In this document: in pieces, positions 1 to 47,893 of the stretch
How the letters are laid out: the number at the start of each line of letters is the position of its first letter
Numbering within the stretch: position 1 is the stretch's first letter
Source: Cyanophora paradoxa CCMP329
Lineage: Eukaryota; Plantae; Glaucophyta
Assembly (NCBI GenBank): GCA_004431415.1
Contig: QPMI01000036.1
Span: 1 to 64,000, forward strand
Length of the DNA: 64,000 bases
Direction of reading: 5' to 3'
Program-made: the position numbers and the translations under genes
Notes under the pieces: model-generated
What the model was told of the DNA's origin: nothing
Databases searched by the model: none
Seen by the model: only the letters and a program-made list of their open reading frames with translations

Positions 1-3000
1 CTAACCCTAACCCTAACCCTAACCCTAACCCTAACCCTAACCCTAACCCTAACCCTAACCCTAACCCTAACCCTAACCCTAACCCTAACCCTAACCCTAA
101 CCCTAACCCTAACCCTAACCCTAACCCTAACCCTAACCCTAACCCTAACCTAACCCTAACCCTAACCCTAACCCTAACCCTAACCCTAACCCTAACCCTA
201 ACCCTAACCCTAACCCTAACCCTAACCCTAACCCTAACCCTAACCCTAACCCTAACCCTAACCCTAACCCTAACCCTAACCCTAACCCTAACCCTAACCC
301 TAACCCTAACCCTAACCCTAACCCTAACCCTAACCCTAACCCTAACCCTAACCCTAACCCTAACCCTAACCCTAACCCTAACCCTAACCCTAACCCTAAC
401 CCTAACCCTAACCCTAACCCTAACCCTAACCCTAACCCTAACCCTAACCCTAACCCTAACCCTAACCCTAACCCTAACCCTAACCCTAACCCTAACCCTA
501 ACCCTAACCCTAACCCTAACCCTAACCCTAACCCTAACCCTAACCCTAACCCTAACCCTAACCCTAACCCTAACCCTAACCCTAACCCTAACCCTAACCC
601 TAACCCTAACCCTAACCCTAACCCTAACCCTAACCCTAACCCTAACCCTAACCCTAACCCTAACCCTAACCCTAACCCTAACCCTAACCCTAACCCTAAC
701 CCTAACCCTAACCCTAACCCTAACCCTAACCCTAACCCTAACCCTAACCCTAACCCTAACCCTAACCCTAACCCTAACCCTAACCCTAACCCTAACCCTA
801 ACCCTAACCCTAACCCTAACCCTAACCCTAACCCTAACCCTAACCCTAACCCTAACCCTAACCCTAACCCTAACCCTAACCCTAACCCTAACCCTAACCC
901 TAACCCTAACCCTAACCCTAACCCTAACCCTAACCCTAACCCTAACCCTAACCCTAACCCTAACCCTAACCCTAACCCTAACCCTAACCCTAACCCTAAC
1001 CCTAACCCTAACCCTAACCCTAACCCTAACCCTAACCCTAACCCTAACCCTAACCCTAACCCTAACCCTAACCCTAACCCTAACCCTAACCCTAACCCTA
1101 ACCCTAACCCTAACCCTAACCCTAACCCTAACCCTAACCCTAACCCTAACCCTAACCCTAACCCTAACCCTAACCCTAACCCTAACCCTAACCCTAACCC
1201 TAACCCTAACCCTAACCCTAACCCTAACCCTAACCCTAACCCTAACCCTAACCCTAACCCTAACCCTAACCCTAACCCTAACCCTAACCCTAACCCTAAC
1301 CCTAACCCTAACCCTAACCCTAACCCTAACCCTAACCCTAACCCTAACCCTAACCCTAACCCTAACCCTAACCCTAACCCTAACCCTAACCCTAACCCTA
1401 ACCCTAACCCTAACCCTAACCCTAACCCTAACCCTAACCCTAACCCTAACCCTAACCCTAACCCTAACCCTAACCCTAACCCTAACCCTAACCCTAACCC
1501 TAACCCTAACCCTAACCCTAACCCTAACCCTAACCCTAACCCTAACCCTAACCCTAACCCTAACCCTAACCCTAACCCTAACCCTAACCCTAACCCTAAC
1601 CCTAACCCTAACCCTAACCCTAACCCTAACCCTAACCCTAACCCTAACCCTAACCCTAACCCTAACCCTAACCCTAACCCTAACCCTAACCCTAACCCTA
1701 ACCCTAACCCTAACCCTAACCCTAACCCTAACCCTAACCCTAACCCTAACCCTAACCCTAACCCTAACCCTAACCCTAACCCTAACCCTAACCCTAACCC
1801 TAACCCTAACCCTAACCCTAACCCTAACCCTAACCCTAACCCTAACCCTAACCCTAACCCTAACCCTAACCCTAACCCTAACCCTAACCCTAACCCTAAC
1901 CCTAACCCTAACCCTAACCCTAACCCTAACCCTAACCCTAACCCTAACCCTAACCCTAACCCTAACCCTAACCCTAACCCTAACCCTAACCCTAACCCTA
2001 ACCCTAACCCTAACCCTAACCCTAACCCTAACCCTAACCCTAACCCTAACCCTAACCCTAACCCTAACCCTAACCCTAACCCTAACCCTAACCCTAACCC
2101 TAACCCTAACCCTAACCCTAACCCTAACCCTAACCCTAACCCTAACCCTAACCCTAACCCTAACCCTAACCCTAACCCTAACCCTAACCCTAACCCTAAC
2201 CCTAACCCTAACCCTAACCCTAACCCTAACCCTAACCCTAACCCTAACCCTAACCCTAACCCTAACCCTAACCCTAACCCTAACCCTAACCCTAACCCTA
2301 ACCCTAACCCTAACCCTAACCCTAACCTAACCCTAACCCTAACCCTAACCCTAACCCTAACCCTAACCCTAACCCTAACCCTAACCCTAACCCTAACCCT
2401 AACCCTAACCCTAACCTAACCCTAACCCTAACCCTAACCCTAACCCTAACCCTAACCCTAACCCTAACCCTAACCCTAACCCTAACCCTAACCCTAACCC
2501 TAACCCTAACCCTAACCCTAACCCTAACCCTAACCCTAACCCTAACCCTAACCCTAACCCTAACCCTAACCCTAACCCTAACCCTAACCCTAACCCTAAC
2601 CCTAACCCTAACCCTAACCCTAACCCTAACCCTAACCCTAACCCTAACCCTAACCCTAACCCTAACCCTAACCCTAACCCTAACCCTAACCCTAACCCTA
2701 ACCCTAACCCTAACCCTAACCCTAACCCTAACCCTAACCCTAACCCTAACCCTAACCCTAACCCTAACCCTAACCCTAACCCTAACCCTAACCCTAACCC
2801 TAACCCTAACCCTAACCCTAACCCTAACCCTAACCCTAACCCTAACCCTAACCCTAACCCTAACCCTAACCCTAACCCTAACCCTAACCCTAACCCTAAC
2901 CCTAACCCTAACCCTAACCCTAACCCTAACCCTAACCCTAACCCTAACCCTAACCCTAACCCTAACCCTAACCCTAACCCTAACCCTAACCCTAACCCTA

Positions 3001-4680
3001 ACCCTAACCCTAACCCTAACCCTAACCCTAACCCTAACCCTAACCCTAACCCTAACCCTAACCCTAACCCTAACCCTAACCCTAACCCTAACCCTAACCC
3101 TAACCCTAACCCTAACCCTAACCCTAACCCTAACCCTAACCCTAACCCTAACCCTAACCCTAACCCTAACCCTAACCCTAACCCTAACCCTAACCCTAAC
3201 CCTAACCCTAACCCTAACCCTAACCCTAACCCTAACCCTAACCCTAACCCTAACCCTAACCCTAACCCTAACCCTAACCCTAACCCTAACCCTAACCCTA
3301 ACCCTAACCCTAACCCTAACCCTAACCCTAACCCTAACCCTAACCCTAACCCTAACCCTAACCCTAACCCTAACCCTAACCCTAACCCTAACCCTAACCC
3401 TAACCCTAACCCTAACCCTAACCCTAACCCTAACCCTAACCCTAACCCTAACCCTAACCCTAACCCTAACCCTAACCCTAACCCTAACCCTAACCCTAAC
3501 CCTAACCCTAACCCTAACCCTAACCCTAACCCTAACCCTAACCCTAACCCTAACCCTAACCCTAACCCTAACCCTAACCCTAACCCTAACCCTAACCCTA
3601 ACCCTAACCCTAACCCTAACCCTAACCCTAACCCTAACCCTAACCCTAACCCTAACCCTAACCCTAACCCTAACCCTAACCCTAACCCTAACCCTAACCC
3701 TAACCCTAACCCTAACCCTAACCCTAACCCTAACCCTAACCCTAACCCTAACCCTAACCCTAACCCTAACCCTAACCCTAACCCTAACCCTAACCCTAAC
3801 CCTAACCCTAACCCTAACCCTAACCCTAACCCTAACCCTAACCCTAACCCTAACCCTAACCCTAACCCTAACCCTAACCCTAACCCTAACCCTAACCCTA
3901 ACCCTAACCCTAACCCTAACCCTAACCCTAACCCTAACCCTAACCCTAACCCTAACCCTAACCCTAACCCTAACCCTAACCCTAACCCTAACCCTAACCC
4001 TAACCCTAACCCTAACCCTAACCCTAACCCTAACCCTAACCCTAACCCTAACCCTAACCCTAACCCTAACCCTAACCCTAACCCTAACCCTAACCCTAAC
4101 CCTAACCCTAACCCTAACCCTAACCCTAACCCTAACCCTAACCCTAACCCTAACCCTAACCCTAACCCTAACCCTAACCCTAACCCTAACCCTAACCCTA
4201 ACCCTAACCCTAACCCTAACCCTAACCCTAACCCTAACCCTAACCCTAACCCTAACCCTAACCCTAACCCTAACCCTAACCCTAACCCTAACCCTAACCC
4301 TAACCCTAACCCTAACCCTAACCCTAACCCTAACCCTAACCCTAACCCTAACCCTAACCCTAACCCTAACCCTAACCCTAACCCTAACCCTAACCCTAAC
4401 CCTAACCCTAACCCTAACCCTAACCCTAACCCTAACCCTAACCCTAACCCTAACCCTAACCCTAACCCTAACCCTAACCCTAACCCTAACCCTAACCCTA
4501 ACACCTAACCCTAACCCTAACCCTACCCTAACCCTAACCCTAACCCTAAACCCTCTAACCCTAAACCCTAACCCTAACCTAACCCTAACCCTAACCTAAC
4601 CCTGAACCCTAACCCTAACCCTAACCCTAACCCTAACCTAACCCTAACCCTAACCTAACCTAACCCTAACCCTAACTAAC

Positions 4681-4721
<41 letters not shown>

Positions 4722-5699
4722 CCCTAACCCTAACCTAACCCTAACCCTAACCCTAACCCTAACCTAACCCTAACCTAACCTAACCCTAACCCTAACCTAA
4801 CTAACCCTAACCCTAACCCTAACCCTAACCCTAACCCTAACCCTAACCCTAACCCTAACCCTAACCCTAACCCTAACCCTAACCCTAACCCTACCTAACC
4901 CTAACCCTAACCCTAACCCTAACCTAACCCTAACCCTAACCCTAACCCTAACCCTAACCCTAACCCTAACCTAACCCTAACCCTAACCCTAACCCTAACC
5001 TAACTAACCTAACAACCTAACCTAACCCTAACCTAACCCTAACCTAACTAACCCTAACCTAACCCTAACCCTAACCTAACCCTAACCCTAACCCTAACCT
5101 AACCCTAACCCTAACCTAACCCTAACCCTAACCCTAACCCTAACCTAACTAACCCTAACCCTAACCCTAACCCTAACCCTAACCCTAACCTAACCCTAAC
5201 CTAACCTAACCTAACCTAACCCTAACCTAACCCTAACCCTAACCCTAACCTAACCCTAACCTAACCCTAACCCTAACCTAACCCTAACCCTAACCCTAAC
5301 CCTAACCCTAACAACCCTAACCCTAACCCTAACCCTAACCCTAACCCTAACCTAACCCTAACCTAACCCTAACCCTAACCCTAACCTAACCCTACCCTAA
5401 CCCTAACCTAACCTAACCCTAACCCTAACCCTAACCCTAACACCTAACCCTAACCCTAACCCTAACCCTAACCCTAACCCTAACCCTAACCCTAACCCTA
5501 ACCCTAACCAACCTAACCTAACCCTAACCCCCAACCCTAACCCCTAACCTAACCTAACCCTAACCCTAACCTAACCCTAACCTAACCCTAACCCTAACCC
5601 TAACCTAACCTAACGCCTAACCCTAACCCTAACCCTAACCCTAACCCTAACCCTAACCCTAACCCTAACCTAACCCTAACCCTAACCCTAACCCTAACC

Positions 5700-5736
<37 letters not shown>

Positions 5737-5916
5737 TAACCCTAACCCTAACCCTAACCCTAACCTAACCTACCCTAACCCTAACCCTAACCTACCCTAA
5801 CCCTAACCCTAACCCTAACCCTAACCCTAACCTAACCCTAACCCTAACCCTAACCTAACCCTAACCCTAACCCTAACCTACCTAACCCTAACCCTAACCC
5901 TAACCCTAACCCAACC

Positions 5917-5957
<41 letters not shown>

Positions 5958-7143
5958 CCCTAACCCTAACCCTAACCCTACCCTAACCCTAACCCTAACC
6001 CTAACCTAACCCTAACCCTAACCCTAACCCTAACCTACCTAACCCTAACCTAACCCTACCTAACCCTAACCCTAACCCTAACCCTAACCCTAACCCTAAC
6101 CCTAACCCTAACCCTAACCCTAACCTAACCCTAACCCTAACCCTAACCCTAACCCTAACCCTACCTAACCTAACCCTAACCCTAACCCTAACCTACCTAA
6201 CCCTAACCCTAACCCTAACCCTAACCTAACCTAACCCTAACCCTAACCCTAACCCTAACCCTAACCCTAACCCTAACCCTAACCTAACCCTAACCCTAAC
6301 CCTAACCCTAACCCTAACCCTAACCTAACCCTAACCCTAACCCTAACCCTAACCCTAACCCTAACCCTAACCCTAACCCTAACCCTAACCCTAACCTAAC
6401 CCTAACCCTAACCCTAACCCTAACCCTAACCCTAACCCTAACCCTAACCCTAACCTACCTAACCCTAACCTAACCCTAACCCTAACCCTAACCCTAACCC
6501 TAACCCTAACCCTAACCTAACCCTAACCCTAACCCTAACCCTAACCCTAACCTAACCCTAACCCTAACCTACTAACCCTAACCCTAACCCTAACCTAACC
6601 CTAACCCTAACCCTAACCCTAACCCTAACCCTAACCCTAACCCTAACCCTAACCCTAACCCTAACCCTAACCCTAACCCTAACCCTAACCCTAACCTAAC
6701 CCTAACCCTAACCCTAACCCTAACCCTAACCCTAACCCTAACCCTAACCCTAACCTAACCCTAACCCTAACCCTAACCCTAACCCTAACCCTAACCCTAA
6801 CCCTAACCCTAACCCTAACCCTAACCCTAACCCTACACCCTAACCCTACTAACCCTAACCTAACCCTAACCCTAACCCTAACCCTAACCCTAACCCTAAC
6901 CCTAACCCTAACCTAACCCTAACCCTAACCCTAACCCTAACCCTAACCCTAACCTAACCCTAACCCTAACACCTAACCCTAACCTAACCCTAACCCTAAC
7001 CCTAACCCTAACCCTAACCCTAACCCTAACCCTAACCCTAACCCTAACCTAACCCTAACCCTAACCCTAACCCTAACCCTAACCTAACCCTAACCCTAAC
7101 CCTAACCCTAACCCTAACCCTAACCCTAACCCTAACCCTAACC

Positions 7144-7180
<37 letters not shown>

Positions 7181-7343
7181 TAACCCTAACCCTAACCCTA
7201 ACCCTAACCCTAACCTAACCCTAACCCTAACCCTAACCCTAACCCTAACCCTAACCCTAACCCTAACCCTAACCCTAACCCTAACCCTAACCCTAACCCT
7301 AACCTAACCTAACCCTAACCTAACCCTAACCCTAACCCTAACC

Positions 7344-7384
<41 letters not shown>

Positions 7385-7894
7385 CCCTAACCCTAACCCT
7401 AACCCTAACCCTAACCCTAACCCTAACCCTAACCCTAACCCTAACCCTAACCCTAACCCTAACCCTAACCCTAACCCTAACCCTAAACCTAACCCTAACC
7501 CTACCTAACCTAACCCTAACCCTAACCCTACCTAACCCTAACCCTAACCCTAACCTAACCCTAACCTAACCCTAACCCTAACCCTAACCCTAACCCTAAC
7601 CCTAACCCTAACCCTAACCCTAACCCTAACCCTAACCCTACCTAACCCTAACCCTAACCCTAACCCTAACCCTAACCCTAACCTAACCCTAACCCTAACC
7701 CTAACCTAACCCTAACCCTAACCCTAACCCTAACCCTAACCCTAACCTAACCCTAACCCTAACCCTAACCCTAACCCTAACCCTAACCCTACCCTAACCC
7801 TAACCCTAACCCTAACCCTAACCCTAACCCTAACCCTAACCCTAACCCTAACCCTAACCTAACCCTAACCCTAACCCTAACCCTAACCCTAACC

Positions 7895-7935
<41 letters not shown>

Positions 7936-8162
7936 CCCTAACCCTAACCCTAACCCTAACCCTAACCCTAACCCTAACCCTAACCCTAACCCTAACCCTA
8001 ACCCTAACCCTAACCCTAACCCTAACCCTAACCCTAACCCTAACCTAACCCTAACCCTAACCCTAACCCTAACCCTAACCCTAACCCTAACCCTAACCCT
8101 AACCCTAACCCTAACCCTAACCCTAACCCTAACCCTAACCCTAACCCTAACCCTAACCCTAA
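1..8162. repeat. Telomeric repeat array (CCCTAA)n, i.e. TTAGGG on the - strand; left chromosome end
   Basis: Continuous CCCTAA hexamers from base 1 to 8162. Nearly perfect to ~4500, with many single-base indel variants at ~4500-7900. Confidence 0.99.
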
Positions 8163-42285: not shown

Positions 42286-44121
42286 ACGCAAAGCCTTGCC
42301 ATGGGGCTGTGCATGCATCATACCTATACAGCATACTCGAAAGCAGTGCCCTTCTGGTAGAATGGGGCAGGCTCTGAGAGAGGCTCCCGCCGGAAACTCC
42401 CGAAGTAGAAAGTGCCGGAGTACAGGAAGCAGGCCACGAGGAGGCTGAGGTATGGGGCATGGGTTCAGAACAAAAAGTGCCTGGGTTCAGAAAGCAGGCA
42501 GGGGGCCGAAAATGTGCGCGCGTGGGAGGGGGGGGGGGGGGGGGGAGGAGGGGGGGAGGGGGGCGGGGGGAGGAACTTACGTCACGACGAAGAAGTAAAA
42601 TACGAGTGGGCCGATCATTTCTAGCCCGCTCGCCTGCCCCAGTGCGTACACCTACGGGATGGACGAAGGGCACGGAATCAGTGCAAGTGTAGCGTCCAGC
42701 TTCCTCGGCCCCGCTCACCTCGCTGTACGCAATGAGGCTCGCTGCCCCGCCCAGCCCCGTGGCGCCCAATATCTGAGCGCTGGTGCGCGTGTCCGCCCTT
42801 GTCCCTCCCTGTGTCAGCCCGCGTGGCAGCGAGCTGTTCGGCGTTGGAATGTGCACCCATTCAATGCCGAAAAGATGCAGACGGCCAGCGCCGTGGCGGA
42901 TGCGCCTGCCAGGCGCTCCGTGATCACCATGAGCTCGCTTGAGTAGACCCAACCAGCCCCATGGTACTTGGCTTCCGGGTAGAGCCTGGTGTCGGCGGGC
43001 CGGTGCAGCGTCAGGCCGGCTGAACATGGCGAGCAAGAGAGGCCGACCTCTCGACGAATGTGTAGGGGTGGGCGAGCTTCCACAGCCCGAATGCCAAGAT
43101 GAACAACGGAAGTAGAAAGACGAATAGAATCTCGAAGCTTCAGGATGAAGCTCCAGGTCAGCGAATCGAAAGCAGACACGAAAAAAAGTCCTGGAGACAC
43201 GAACAGCGTCAGGCCCGTCGCCTTCGAGAGCCCACGGTGAAGGCTCTTGTTGAGGTAGAGGCGCATGCAGGCTAGGAACGCTAGCAGTGCGTAGCCAATC
43301 CAAATAATCAGAGAAAGAACGGTCCCCAGAGTCGCTGGGGCAGGCTGCTGATGATGCGCTGTCGGCTGCGCATGCAGGGAATTGTTTGAGGGGATGCCGA
43401 CCCGGATTTCCGAAATTGGCAGGGCTAAGCACCTGGAGGAAATGGATATACATAGCCGCGCTTATGATGCAGGCAAGCGCCGTTGCAATCAGGCACGTGA
43501 ACGTGACCCTGTTGTAAGGGTGTTGTGTTTTCGACCGACCTGGGGGGTTGTGTTTTCGACCGACCTGTTGTTCGCACGGCGAAGGGCGAGCCAGAAGACC
43601 GTTGCGAGCGTCATAGTTATGATGGCGCCAATCCGAATCTCGACGAAGAAGATCTACGCGACAGAATTCATTTTTCAATGATTCGGATTTATCACTAGGC
43701 TTACGGAGTTGTACAGTGTCGTCTCGTTAGCAGAGAGGTTTGCTGGAGAAATAAATCAGTACGATTTCAATGTCTACTTTCGTTCCAGGACGCGCACGGA
43801 AAATGAAGCGCAGATGCGAGATCGGGCCTGCGAGGATGTTCGGGGCATCAGCTTCAGGTGTCATACCGGGCGGGCTTCGGCTGATACAGGACTGGGCTAG
43901 CCGGAGCACCCATAAGGAGCCAGAGCCCTGAACGAGGCTTGTCAGGCCTGCACATCGGAAGGCGGCGGCGCCGCACCCCAAACGAAGAATAGTAGCGGCG
44001 CCGCGAATAAGAACACACTTCCGAAGAGCAGCTGGTATGTAAGCAGCTTAGAAAGCGCAGGTATGTTGACGGGACGGCGTACCTGTTCAGCCTGCGAAGG
44101 GGCCGCCATCTGCGCAAGCAT
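42281..44121 (-). CDS. Hypothetical membrane protein, multi-exon (3' end unclear)
   Basis: Hydrophobic segments (LLFGSVFLFAAPLLFFVW; VTFTCLIATALACIISAAMYIHFL) and plausible short introns. No family recognised. Confidence 0.35.
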
Positions 44122-44526
44122 CGATGTAAGAGCACCGTAGGCAAATTACACCAACCAGCGCTAGTTAGCTCGATCGACGTCGACACGTCTTCGTATCGGT
44201 GCTCATATGCATCAGTTGCAGCTGCAGCTGCAGCTGCATTTTGCAGCTGACCAGTCTAGTCGCGGCCAGAGGTGTACGTGCCATGTCGCGACCAGTTAAG
44301 CGTACGTGCTTACGCCCACACGCACGCGCTTCTCGGCGCGCCTGGCGAACCTTATCTGGTAATCTCCGACTTCCACGGGTACAGCCCTCCCTTCGTCTTA
44401 CCGGGTACAGTGTCGTCCAGCAAGGTCCGCACGTTTGTCTCACCGCCGTCAGCCTTCCTCCTCGTGCCTGGGGCTCTCCAAAAGGCCCCGATGCCGCCTG
44501 AGGGAGCGCTTTTCTCCAAGCGCAGG

Positions 44527-45315
44527 ATGCTGCGGTCACTAGCAGGCAACGCGCGGGCGCTGCGGCGCGCGGCGTTGCCGGTCGCGTGCGTTCGCGCGTC
44601 TTTGGCGCCTGCATCTACTTCGGCGGGCTTCCACGCGTCCGCGGCCTCGCTCGCCGGCGAGTCCCCGATCTACAAGGCTGCCAGCATGCTCGGCAAGAAC
44701 ACGCCGATTCCGATGTCCCCCGAGGAGGCTACACTCGATCGCGTCCCCAACCCGAACCCCGGCACTCAGTACCTCGTGCGCTTCACGTGCCCGGAGTTCA
44801 CATCAATCTGCCCGGTCACTGGAGCGGTGCGCCACGCCGCGCGTGCCCTCTCGCGGCGTCATACGTGCGCTGTCCGTGGTCTGACACCGGGACGGTCGTC
44901 TCAGCCTGACTTCTGCCACCTCGTCATCGACTACGTGCCGCGGGACTACCTGGTAGAATCAAAGTCCCTCAAGCTCTACCTGGGCTCCTTCCGTAACCAC
45001 GGCGCCTTCCATGAGGCCTGCACCGTGATGGTGGGCCCGCTCCGCCCCCCGCCCCGCGAGGCCCCTGCAGCTGGCCGCGACCCCTCACCCCGCGCAGGTC
45101 GGACAGCGCCTCGTCAAGGAGCTTGACTGCATCTGGCTGCGCGTCGGCGGCTACTGGTGCGGACTCGCACCCGCGCCGCACCTCGCGCCCCTGACCTCTA
45201 TCTCAGGTACCCGCGCGGCGGCATCCCGATCGATGTCTTCTTCCAGACAGGCCCACCCCCGCCGGGCGTCTGGATTCCGGACCAGGGCGTGCCCACCTAC
45301 CGCGGGCGCGGCTAG
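44527..45315 (+). CDS. queF: NADPH-dependent 7-cyano-7-deazaguanine (preQ0) reductase, unimodular type I, with mitochondrial-like presequence
   Basis: Introns 44827-44904, 45031-45097 and 45157-45206 give ...[19 protein letters not shown]|[42 protein letters not shown]|[20 protein letters not shown]|[35 protein letters not shown]. The catalytic Cys/Asp, the QueF motif and the HE motif are intact. Confidence 0.95.
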
Positions 45316-45433
45316 TGTACCGCGCTTGCCCACATGAGAAATGTTATAAGAGCGACGCGCTGCCGCCGTTTGCTACTCGTGACGCTGCTACAATTTTGCG
45401 CGGTGGCGCTTGCGATTGCTCGCATGGGGAGCT

Positions 45434-47893
45434 TCAGCGGGGCCGGATCGTGATGGCGACTTCGCGGATCTCGCAGGCCTGCGCGGCAAGTGTGGCGGCG
45501 GAACGGCGAGTCCTCCCCTGGGGGGGCGCCACTGGCGCGGCGCCCCGCATGAAGCCTGCGCGGCGCTGCTCTGCGAGAAGAGCCTCGCGCTCCTCGGAGT
45601 TTAGCGCCGGCACGGCCTCCCGCGCCGCGCTGTACGCCAAGAAGAAGCCTCCGCCGGGCGCCTCATGTTCCAGTATCTGCGCCGCGTCAGACCGTCTGGG
45701 GCCTCGCCAAGCGACCCGTGTCGCACCTCGAGCTCAACCCCGCTGCCGACGGCGAACGAGGCGGCCGGCCTGCGGTGGCCCGCTGCTTCCGGCTCGAGAG
45801 GGCGCGCGACCAGAGGCACGCTGATGAAGAACACTGCCTCGGGCCCTTCTCTTTCTGCCTGAAAAGGATGCCGCATGAGGGAGGCGCCCCGCGCGCGCGC
45901 GCGCGCGTCCGAGGGGGCGCGCCTGGTCGACGGTGACCGTCAGATCTACCCAGAGGAAGCCTTCCCAGGCGCCAGAGAAGCCTCCCGAGCTCCACGCCCA
46001 CTGATGGCCTTGTTAGGGGCCGCGGGATCGGGGGCGGGGCACGCGACGCGCCCGCGGCGGGGCCTTGAAGGCACTCGTGTCAAAGGAAGCTGTCGACACG
46101 AGGGCGTAGCGCAGCGCCCCGCCCTCCGCCTCGGCCCCCGCGAGGTTCTGCGGGGCATCAGGCGCGGGGCGCTGGCTGCGAATCGGGACGGACCGTGAAG
46201 CTCTTGCTCCAGGCGACCGTGTCGGCGTCGCGAACGGTGACCACGGCAGCGAGCCGCCGGCCGGCCTGCAGCCGCGTCAAGCGCTTCGCGACGCCTGCAC
46301 AGGGGCGGGGCACCATCGCGAACTGCCGGACCATGCGGGTGCGGTGATCGGCCTCCGCCTGGCGGGTGCCTCAGTCGCGGGGGCCGGGGCGGGCGGGCGG
46401 GCACACGAGCGGGGAGAGAGGGCAGAGGACGCGGGCGACGAGGTCCTCGACGTGCGCCGAGTAGAGGAGCCCGAAGGGGGCGCCCCCCTCGCTCCACGAG
46501 GTCGCCAGGAGCTCACCGACTCCCCGGCCCGCCGCCCGCTCCGCACGCGCGACTGGACGCCCCGCCTCGGGGGCCGCGAGCGGGCGCGCCGGGGGCGGGC
46601 GGAACCGGCGTCGGAGGCGAGGGTGATCCAGGAGGAGCGGTCGCTGCGGCACGCGAAGAGCTGGCACTCCGCCTCGCCCAGGACCCAGCCTAACCCCGCG
46701 GTGAGCGAACGCCGGAGCGGTCGGGCGGCAGCAGCGGGAGCCTGCGATGGCGAGGGAAGAGTCGCGGCGGCGAAGGAGGGCGGGGAGTCCCCCAAGAGCA
46801 GCAGCAGGACCATTCGGCGCCTGCCCCTCCTGAAGCACCTCCAGGCGGGCTACTACGGCATTTGCAAACTGCCGCGAGGCGTCGGACGGCGGAGGCGGGG
46901 CCCGAAGGTGGCGACATCGAGCACGAACGTAGCGGGTGGTGAGAGGGAACCTGTGCCGCCCATCGATGATTAAAGCAAACCGCAGCATCCGTAGCGCCGA
47001 CCGCCGCTGCGCCAGCCTTCGCTATGTGGGCCACGCACAGCCAAACGGGAAAGGCGGACCTCCCTCGCAACCTTCTTCGGGTCCTCGTACCTGCGAGGGA
47101 GTCAAGACCGGGGCCGACGTTCGGGCGTTCGGGCGCACCTCACAAAGCTCTGACCGCGGGGTAGCGGGGCGTGCGGCCCCAGGGATCGAAAGGACTTCTG
47201 GCAGCGCCCTCGGACCCGCTCGAGCAGCTCGCGGCCCTCCCGCTCGTGCCGCTCCCGGTAGGCGCGGCGCCAGTCGCCCGCCTCGCCGATGCCCTCGTGC
47301 GCAGCGGCGAAGAGCTCAGCGCCGAAGTCCTTCTGGAAGCGCGAGCGCCACAGCGCCGATGCCTCGGCCAGGCGCCGCAGCGTCGAACAGGTCGAGCTCA
47401 GGGCGCAGAGCGAGGTAGCTCCACAGAAACTGAGGATGAGGGCAAGCAGATCCTCAGGAAGGCTCAGAAGCTTCTTGTCCGATTTGAGAGCGATGCGCGC
47501 TGGCCTCCGGCCCACCTCCGTCGCATTCAAGGAGCCGGACCGCGGTGCTCGCCCCCAGGAACTGCTGGACAGGATGCTGCTCGCGCTGCTCTCAGACAAA
47601 GGGCGACCCATAGGACCGCCGCCGCTGGAACGGCACGCGGGGCCAGCAAGGCTGCGGGGCCCTCCTGGAGCGCTGCTGGGCCCAGCAGGAGCGTTGATGG
47701 ACCCCCCTGGAGCGCTGCTGGGACCAGTTGAAGCGCTCATGGGCCCTCCTCGAACGCTGCTGTGTGAACCGGAGGCGCGCGGGGGCCGCGGAGGGCGAGC
47801 CGCCGCGCCTGAGGCGCTCGATGCTGCGGCCGGAGAGCTTCTGGAGGCCGGCCGGGGGATGCGGGATGGACCAGGACCAGGAGCGCCCTGCAT
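45434..47893 (-). CDS. F-box protein
   Basis: LLSLPEDLLALILSFCGATSLCALSSTCSTLRRLAEASALWR F-box. Downstream exons are approximate. Confidence 0.75.

Follow-up and report, generated by a model that had tools for sequence, protein, structure and literature searches.

Eukaryotes are said to be unable to make queuosine and to depend on bacteria for it (PMC13326639, PMC9406330, PMC12301720). What place, then, does a gene for QueF, the enzyme that reduces preQ0 to preQ1 in bacterial queuosine synthesis, have in the genome of the glaucophyte alga Cyanophora paradoxa? The gene lies in the stretch of DNA analysed here, the first 64,000 nucleotides of contig QPMI01000036.1 (referred to as the window), and runs on the plus strand from nt 44527 (ATG) to nt 45315 (TAG). 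A transcribed QueF bearing a presequence hints that Cyanophora makes its own queuosine precursor instead of only scavenging.

Structure and transcription of queF

The queF gene is divided into four exons with an open frame of 197 amino acids. Exon 1 (nt 44527–44826) encodes residues 1–100, comprising a predicted mitochondrial presequence (nt 44527–44655, approximately residues 1–43), the mature N-terminus, and the catalytic Cys95. Exon 2 (nt 44905–45030, residues 101–142) carries Asp102, the QueF motif with Glu118, Glu137, and the backdoor Cys139. Exon 3 (nt 45098–45156) covers residues 143–162, and exon 4 (nt 45207–45315) residues 162–197 and the stop, including a C-terminal tail of the alphaproteobacterial type. 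The exons are separated by intron 1 (nt 44827–44904, 78 nt, in frame and stop-free), intron 2 (nt 45031–45097, 67 nt) and intron 3 (nt 45157–45206, 50 nt), all of them GT-AG and each with a branch-like motif 14–24 nt upstream of the AG. Exons and introns are all on the plus strand. The codons are host-like, with a GC3 of 0.84 in a reading-frame check of the joined exons.

A sequence-only reading of this DNA had proposed a complete queF with three GT-AG introns and had recommended a check on the spliced mRNA. Its coordinates are exact. Each exon is an exact match to the protein tig00000144_g9004.t1 of EukProt Cyanophora paradoxa P009296, and three probable RNA runs from three studies yield contigs in which all three coding introns are precisely skipped. 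The RNA status of these runs is a guess; nevertheless, the skipping of the introns indicates that the contigs derive from cDNA. The coding part of that gene model stands, and a probable 101-nt GT-AG intron in the 5′ UTR (nt 44425–44525, plus strand) had been missed. Its joint is found in one RNA contig (run X15), with 20 nt on the short side of the joint. An in-frame upstream ATG at nt 44491 sits inside this intron, which ends one base before the ATG at nt 44527; splicing it out makes ATG 44527 the start codon. ATG 44491 was ruled out as the start on this ground, that is, by one contig. On the other side, the 3′ UTR extends at least over nt 45316–45360 (plus strand), which is transcribed, and the contigs in X16 and X19 stop at nt 45360.

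The flanks of queF are occupied by spliced genes. A well-covered gene on the minus strand (approximately nt 42300–44379) is arranged head-to-head with queF, the ends of the RNA contigs of the two being separated by only some 25 nt. The product appears to be a membrane protein, and the tested long ORF of this gene has no Pfam match. Downstream, a convergent spliced gene on the minus strand (nt 45339–46400 and beyond) overlaps the 3′ end of queF, so that RNA contigs of both cover parts of nt 45316–45360; two of its splice joints have the unusual ends GC..GC and CT..GC. An F-box domain is encoded at about nt 47330–47470, likewise on the minus strand.

Could queF be a bacterial contaminant, a mis-assembly or a decaying pseudogene? 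The high identity of QueF to free-living alphaproteobacteria would fit contamination, as would the removal of 36 bacterial contigs from the published assembly (PMC6704402), yet the spliceosomal introns are removed in RNA, and one genomic-type contig carries the whole queF stretch unbroken, introns included, together with spliced neighbours. Furthermore, 14 sequencing runs contain 99% of the words of the queF stretch, the GC3 is host-like, and CCCTAA telomere repeats occupy approximately nt 1–8100 of the window on the same contig. The sequence-only reading had argued from host context against contamination, and the spliced neighbours, the telomere and the introns removed in RNA agree with it. 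The splicing data refute both contamination and pseudogene status, to which we assign next to no probability. It is confirmed that queF is a genuine nuclear gene of a eukaryote.

Identity of the enzyme

Against the preQ1 synthase equivalog TIGR03139 (cutoff 86.9), Cyanophora QueF reaches 140 bits, compared with 44.5 against the bimodular model TIGR03138 (cutoff 293). It is a single T-fold domain of less than 200 residues, and the solved structures that match it best, whether compared by sequence or by predicted fold, are those of B. subtilis QueF (PDB 4F8B). The motifs are found at residues 95 (CPVTG), 101 (PDF), 118 (ESKSLK), 135 (FHE) and 163 (YPRGG). The family-defining residues of B. subtilis QueF are Cys55, Asp62, Glu78 and Glu97 (PMC5372742). 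Cys55 and Asp62 correspond to Cys95 and Asp102 of Cyanophora with identical spacing. Glu78, the feature of the QueF motif that separates QueF from GTP cyclohydrolase I and QueF-like proteins, corresponds to Glu118 within ESKSLKLY. Similarly, the substrate-anchoring Glu97 corresponds to Glu137 and the protective backdoor Cys99 to Cys139. The catalytic motifs had been described as intact, and every family-defining residue is indeed present. GTP cyclohydrolase I, QueF-like and bimodular QueF are ruled out by the motif, the scores and the fold ranking. Judged from its sequence, the protein is a bona fide unimodular (YkvM-type) QueF (TIGR03139/PF14489), for which preQ0 reductase activity is expected from knowledge of the family.

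Relatives and origin

Relatives were searched for with contiguous segments of the window, fetched loci or the database record P0001 as query. In bacterial and archaeal species genomes, the best 80 matches share 68–76% identity with Cyanophora QueF and are nearly all labelled Alphaproteobacteria, with a few bins labelled Bdellovibrionota or without assigned label; the search patterns were taken from the query, which biases this list toward near kin. Among QueFs of plasmid records, those of alphaproteobacteria share 66–75% identity, whereas others share 42–50% and are devoid of the C-terminal tail. In a rooted tree, Cyanophora QueF falls in the alphaproteobacterial-type clade with support of 100/100 against Bacillus, Lachnospira, Parabacteroides and Neisseria. 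That the tail recalls alphaproteobacterial QueF had been noticed from the sequence, and both the tree and the 68–76% identity are in agreement. The final trees, built on an alignment of 155 columns, leave out long-branch representatives and near-identical rows and do not sample cyanobacterial and Rickettsia sequences; in four trees the backbone is without resolution.

Some relatives look eukaryotic. The QueF P0002, on a 1.3-kb intronless JGI contig resembling a transcript, is the sister of Cyanophora QueF (support 98–100/89–90), with 78–80% identity (80% over the mature part) and a unique motif in common; its carrier is, at a guess, another glaucophyte. Two others, P0109 (assembly GCA_016292395.1) and P0474, adjoin an alpha-mannosidase gene and an ATP11 gene, respectively, each of these neighbours with an apparent intron. 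Both QueFs are intronless, have their own Arg/Ser-rich extensions, and pair together (99–100/92–98). The loci of this presequence-bearing pair are L002:1643–2419 and L163:760–1308, and the carriers look like two intron-poor eukaryotes; red algae are one guess.

The four eukaryotic QueFs therefore fall in two pairs. Their union was recovered in 0 of 200 bootstraps, although the AU test does not reject it (p=0.17), and the 100/100 row labelled as eukaryotic in the rooted tree is a support against the outgroup only and is no evidence for eukaryotic monophyly. With this p value and 155 undecisive columns, the data are compatible with a single old origin as well as with two separate transfers. Of the proposal that queF was retained from an endosymbiont, the alphaproteobacterial type is upheld, and the single eukaryotic clade was not recovered.

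A viral donor was considered and rejected, the best phage match (48–50%) and the best IMG/VR match (62–69%) being below cellular alphaproteobacteria. The metagenome scan for relatives gave only bacterial-looking loci among the matches listed. In metagenomes, an XRE-family helix-turn-helix domain is fused to alphaproteobacterial-type QueF in at least 18 clusters (P0029, P0123, P0336, P0374, P0385, P0397, P0427 and P0447 among them), and the fusion is possibly a self-regulating QueF. The operon order queA-tgt-queF was observed in about 27 of 80 loci (L005–L077, Azospirillum and Acetobacterales), and queC-queF-queD-queE neighbourhoods in a few other loci such as L081.

The N-terminal extension and probable location of QueF

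The first 43 residues of Cyanophora QueF have no counterpart in bacterial QueF in the alignment and are disordered in the predicted model. In accord with the Arg/Ala/Ser-rich, acid-free extension described earlier, they contain 14 Ala, 6 Ser and 5 Arg but neither Asp nor Glu. The stretch is Arg-rich from residue 3, has its first Phe at residue 35, and is amphipathic, with a hydrophobic moment of 0.69 over residues 10–20. Such presequence-like extensions recur, since three further eukaryote-looking QueFs each bear a different Arg/Ser-rich one. A mitochondrial location, as predicted from the presequence, is the best reading.

Alternatively, QueF may serve the cyanelle (plastid) or both organelles and give preQ1 for plastid tRNAs. 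Cyanelle transit peptides usually have a Phe in the first 10–18 residues (PMC4510345), whereas QueF has none in the first 34 and is Arg-rich from residue 3. The rule has exceptions, as an early Phe is absent in 42 of 187 nucleus-encoded cyanelle proteins, and cyanelle transit peptides are also Ala-rich (PMC4510345). Retention of the 5′ UTR intron would, hypothetically, add 12 residues with a Phe at position 8, a cyanelle-type trait and a possible switch for dual targeting, but retention is seen in no RNA contig. Moreover, QueF is of the alphaproteobacterial and not the cyanobacterial type. It is absent from the accessible parts of the cyanelle-proteome supplements, which is weak evidence. A role in the cyanelle is on balance quite unlikely, and mitochondrial QueF is the reading pursued below.

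A proposed pathway for mitochondrial queuosine

In the proposed pathway, the nucleus-encoded QueF would be imported into mitochondria, lose its presequence, and assemble as a tunnel-fold oligomer. Using matrix NADPH, it would turn preQ0 into preQ1 by reduction of the nitrile via a thioimide at Cys95; Glu137 would anchor the substrate, and Cys139 would act as the protective disulfide partner. The preQ1 would be inserted by a bacterial-like TGT at G34 of the mitochondrial tRNAs for Asp, Asn, His and Tyr, and queuosine would be completed by QueA and QueG/H. The preQ0 would most likely be made from GTP inside the alga by GTP cyclohydrolase I, QueD, QueE and QueC, with import of preQ0 by YhhQ as a side route. 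C. paradoxa has been reported to be without a mitochondrial tRNA-Thr gene, with no mention of a loss of GUN tRNAs (PMC13578239), and queuosine has not been demonstrated in any algal organellar tRNA (PMC12301720). Since the TGT published for the downstream step in algal mitochondria is chlamydial (PMC12301720), the pathway of Cyanophora would be chimeric.

The core of this proposal, a mitochondrial QueF feeding tRNA queuosine whether preQ0 is made de novo or salvaged, appears probable. The fuller version, with preQ0 supplied de novo and with import, activity and partner enzymes as predicted, we regard as evenly balanced. The earlier statement that the window has no other que gene agrees with tblastn, in which bacterial QueA, TGT, QueE and QueD have no significant match there. 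It is conceivable, though less to be expected, that the alga makes no preQ0 and that mitochondrial QueF turns bacterial preQ0, imported by YhhQ, into preQ1. A set of queF-tgt-queA-queG and YhhQ without queD, queE and queC is an established configuration in bacteria, and preQ0 is preferred by E. coli YhhQ (PMC5372724).

The preQ1 might also not be matured at all, QueF being an orphan or repurposed transfer whose product is inserted as is by TGT or goes to secondary metabolites or other nucleic acids; preQ0 is known to feed tRNA, DNA and secondary-metabolite pathways (PMC5699537). Nevertheless, the strong conservation of QueF (78–80% identity to the second eukaryotic copy and 68–76% to bacteria) fits a role in tRNA, as do the recurring presequences and the predicted mitochondrial QueA and QueG of related algae, and we consider repurposing unlikely.

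Cyanophora QueF supplies a step missing from the proposed algal mitochondrial route and extends it upstream. It bears on the capabilities of early mitochondria and on the exchange of micronutrients between algae and bacteria, and an alga that can be cultured makes the queuosine dependence of eukaryotes directly testable. A further and tentative hypothesis, which we hold to be doubtful, is that the alphaproteobacterial-type QueE, QueC and QueF steps were inherited from the mitochondrial endosymbiont and retained in patches, and that GTP-derived queuosine is made in Cyanophora mitochondria. If this were true, universal queuine auxotrophy of eukaryotes would be wrong, auxotrophy would be the result of repeated loss, and the QueE/C/F inheritance would be common to other algae and protists.

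Comparison with known systems

No literature on Cyanophora with queuosine, or on queF with protists, was found in a search that had most subscription journals outside its reach, and queF is unmentioned in the accessible parts of the supplements of the Cyanophora genome, organelle-atlas and cyanelle-proteome papers. Within the same reach, no earlier report of a presequence-bearing alphaproteobacterial-type QueF was found. The sequence-only reading had advised that prior reports in protists be checked before novelty is claimed; precedents exist (PMC12301720, PMC4758236), and the novelty is lower than it implied. Both a QueF in a eukaryote and a bacterial-type queuosine route in mitochondria have precedents, in the Physarum and the Chloropicon and red-algal reports described below.

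With the unimodular QueFs, B. subtilis 4F8B and the alphaproteobacterial subtype (Azospirillum, Thioclava, Emcibacter), the Cyanophora copy shares the T-fold, the QueF motif, the catalytic Cys/Asp/Glu/Glu set and the backdoor Cys. Unlike them, it is nuclear, contains introns, and has a 43-residue presequence, and its gene stands alone, in contrast to the queA-tgt-queF operon of Azospirillum and Acetobacterales. The canonical salvage of queuine in eukaryotes (QTRT1/QTRT2 and QNG1) leads to the same end product, Q34 in GUN tRNAs, yet it takes up finished queuine and has no need of QueF. As a side observation, the part seen of the mitochondrial proteome table of Andalucia lists a queuine tRNA-ribosyltransferase and no QueF (PMC7050145, supplement file 1).

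Physarum polycephalum, like Cyanophora, is a eukaryote with QueF. According to the part of Schaap et al. 2015 that was accessible (PMC4758236), QueD, QueE, QueC and QueF are listed as its preQ1 biosynthesis genes, by which a de novo route to preQ1 is predicted. The closest relatives given there are Cyanidioschyzon for QueD, alphaproteobacteria for QueE and QueC, and the gammaproteobacterium Moritella marina for QueF; location, downstream enzymes and a test of the que set are not given in that part. The Physarum QueF is probably of the bimodular type, and its closeness to Moritella marina suggests an acquisition separate from that of Cyanophora.

The nearest parallel is in algae. For Chloropicon, a mitochondrial salvage route of YhhQ, BL-TGT and QueA along with QueG has been predicted by Turmel et al. 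2025 (PMC12301720), who found orthologues of TGT, QueA and QueG in red algae and proposed the route to be ancestral in Archaeplastida; QueF is not named in the accessible parts of their text and supplements. These enzymes and Cyanophora QueF have in common that they are nucleus-encoded, of bacterial type, predicted to be mitochondrial, and found in Archaeplastida. Cyanophora QueF joins these two scattered precedents, Physarum and the algal route, into a testable case against strict queuine auxotrophy of eukaryotes. The Chloropicon route begins with imported preQ1, whereas QueF would shift the entry to preQ0 or, together with QueD, QueE and QueC, to GTP.
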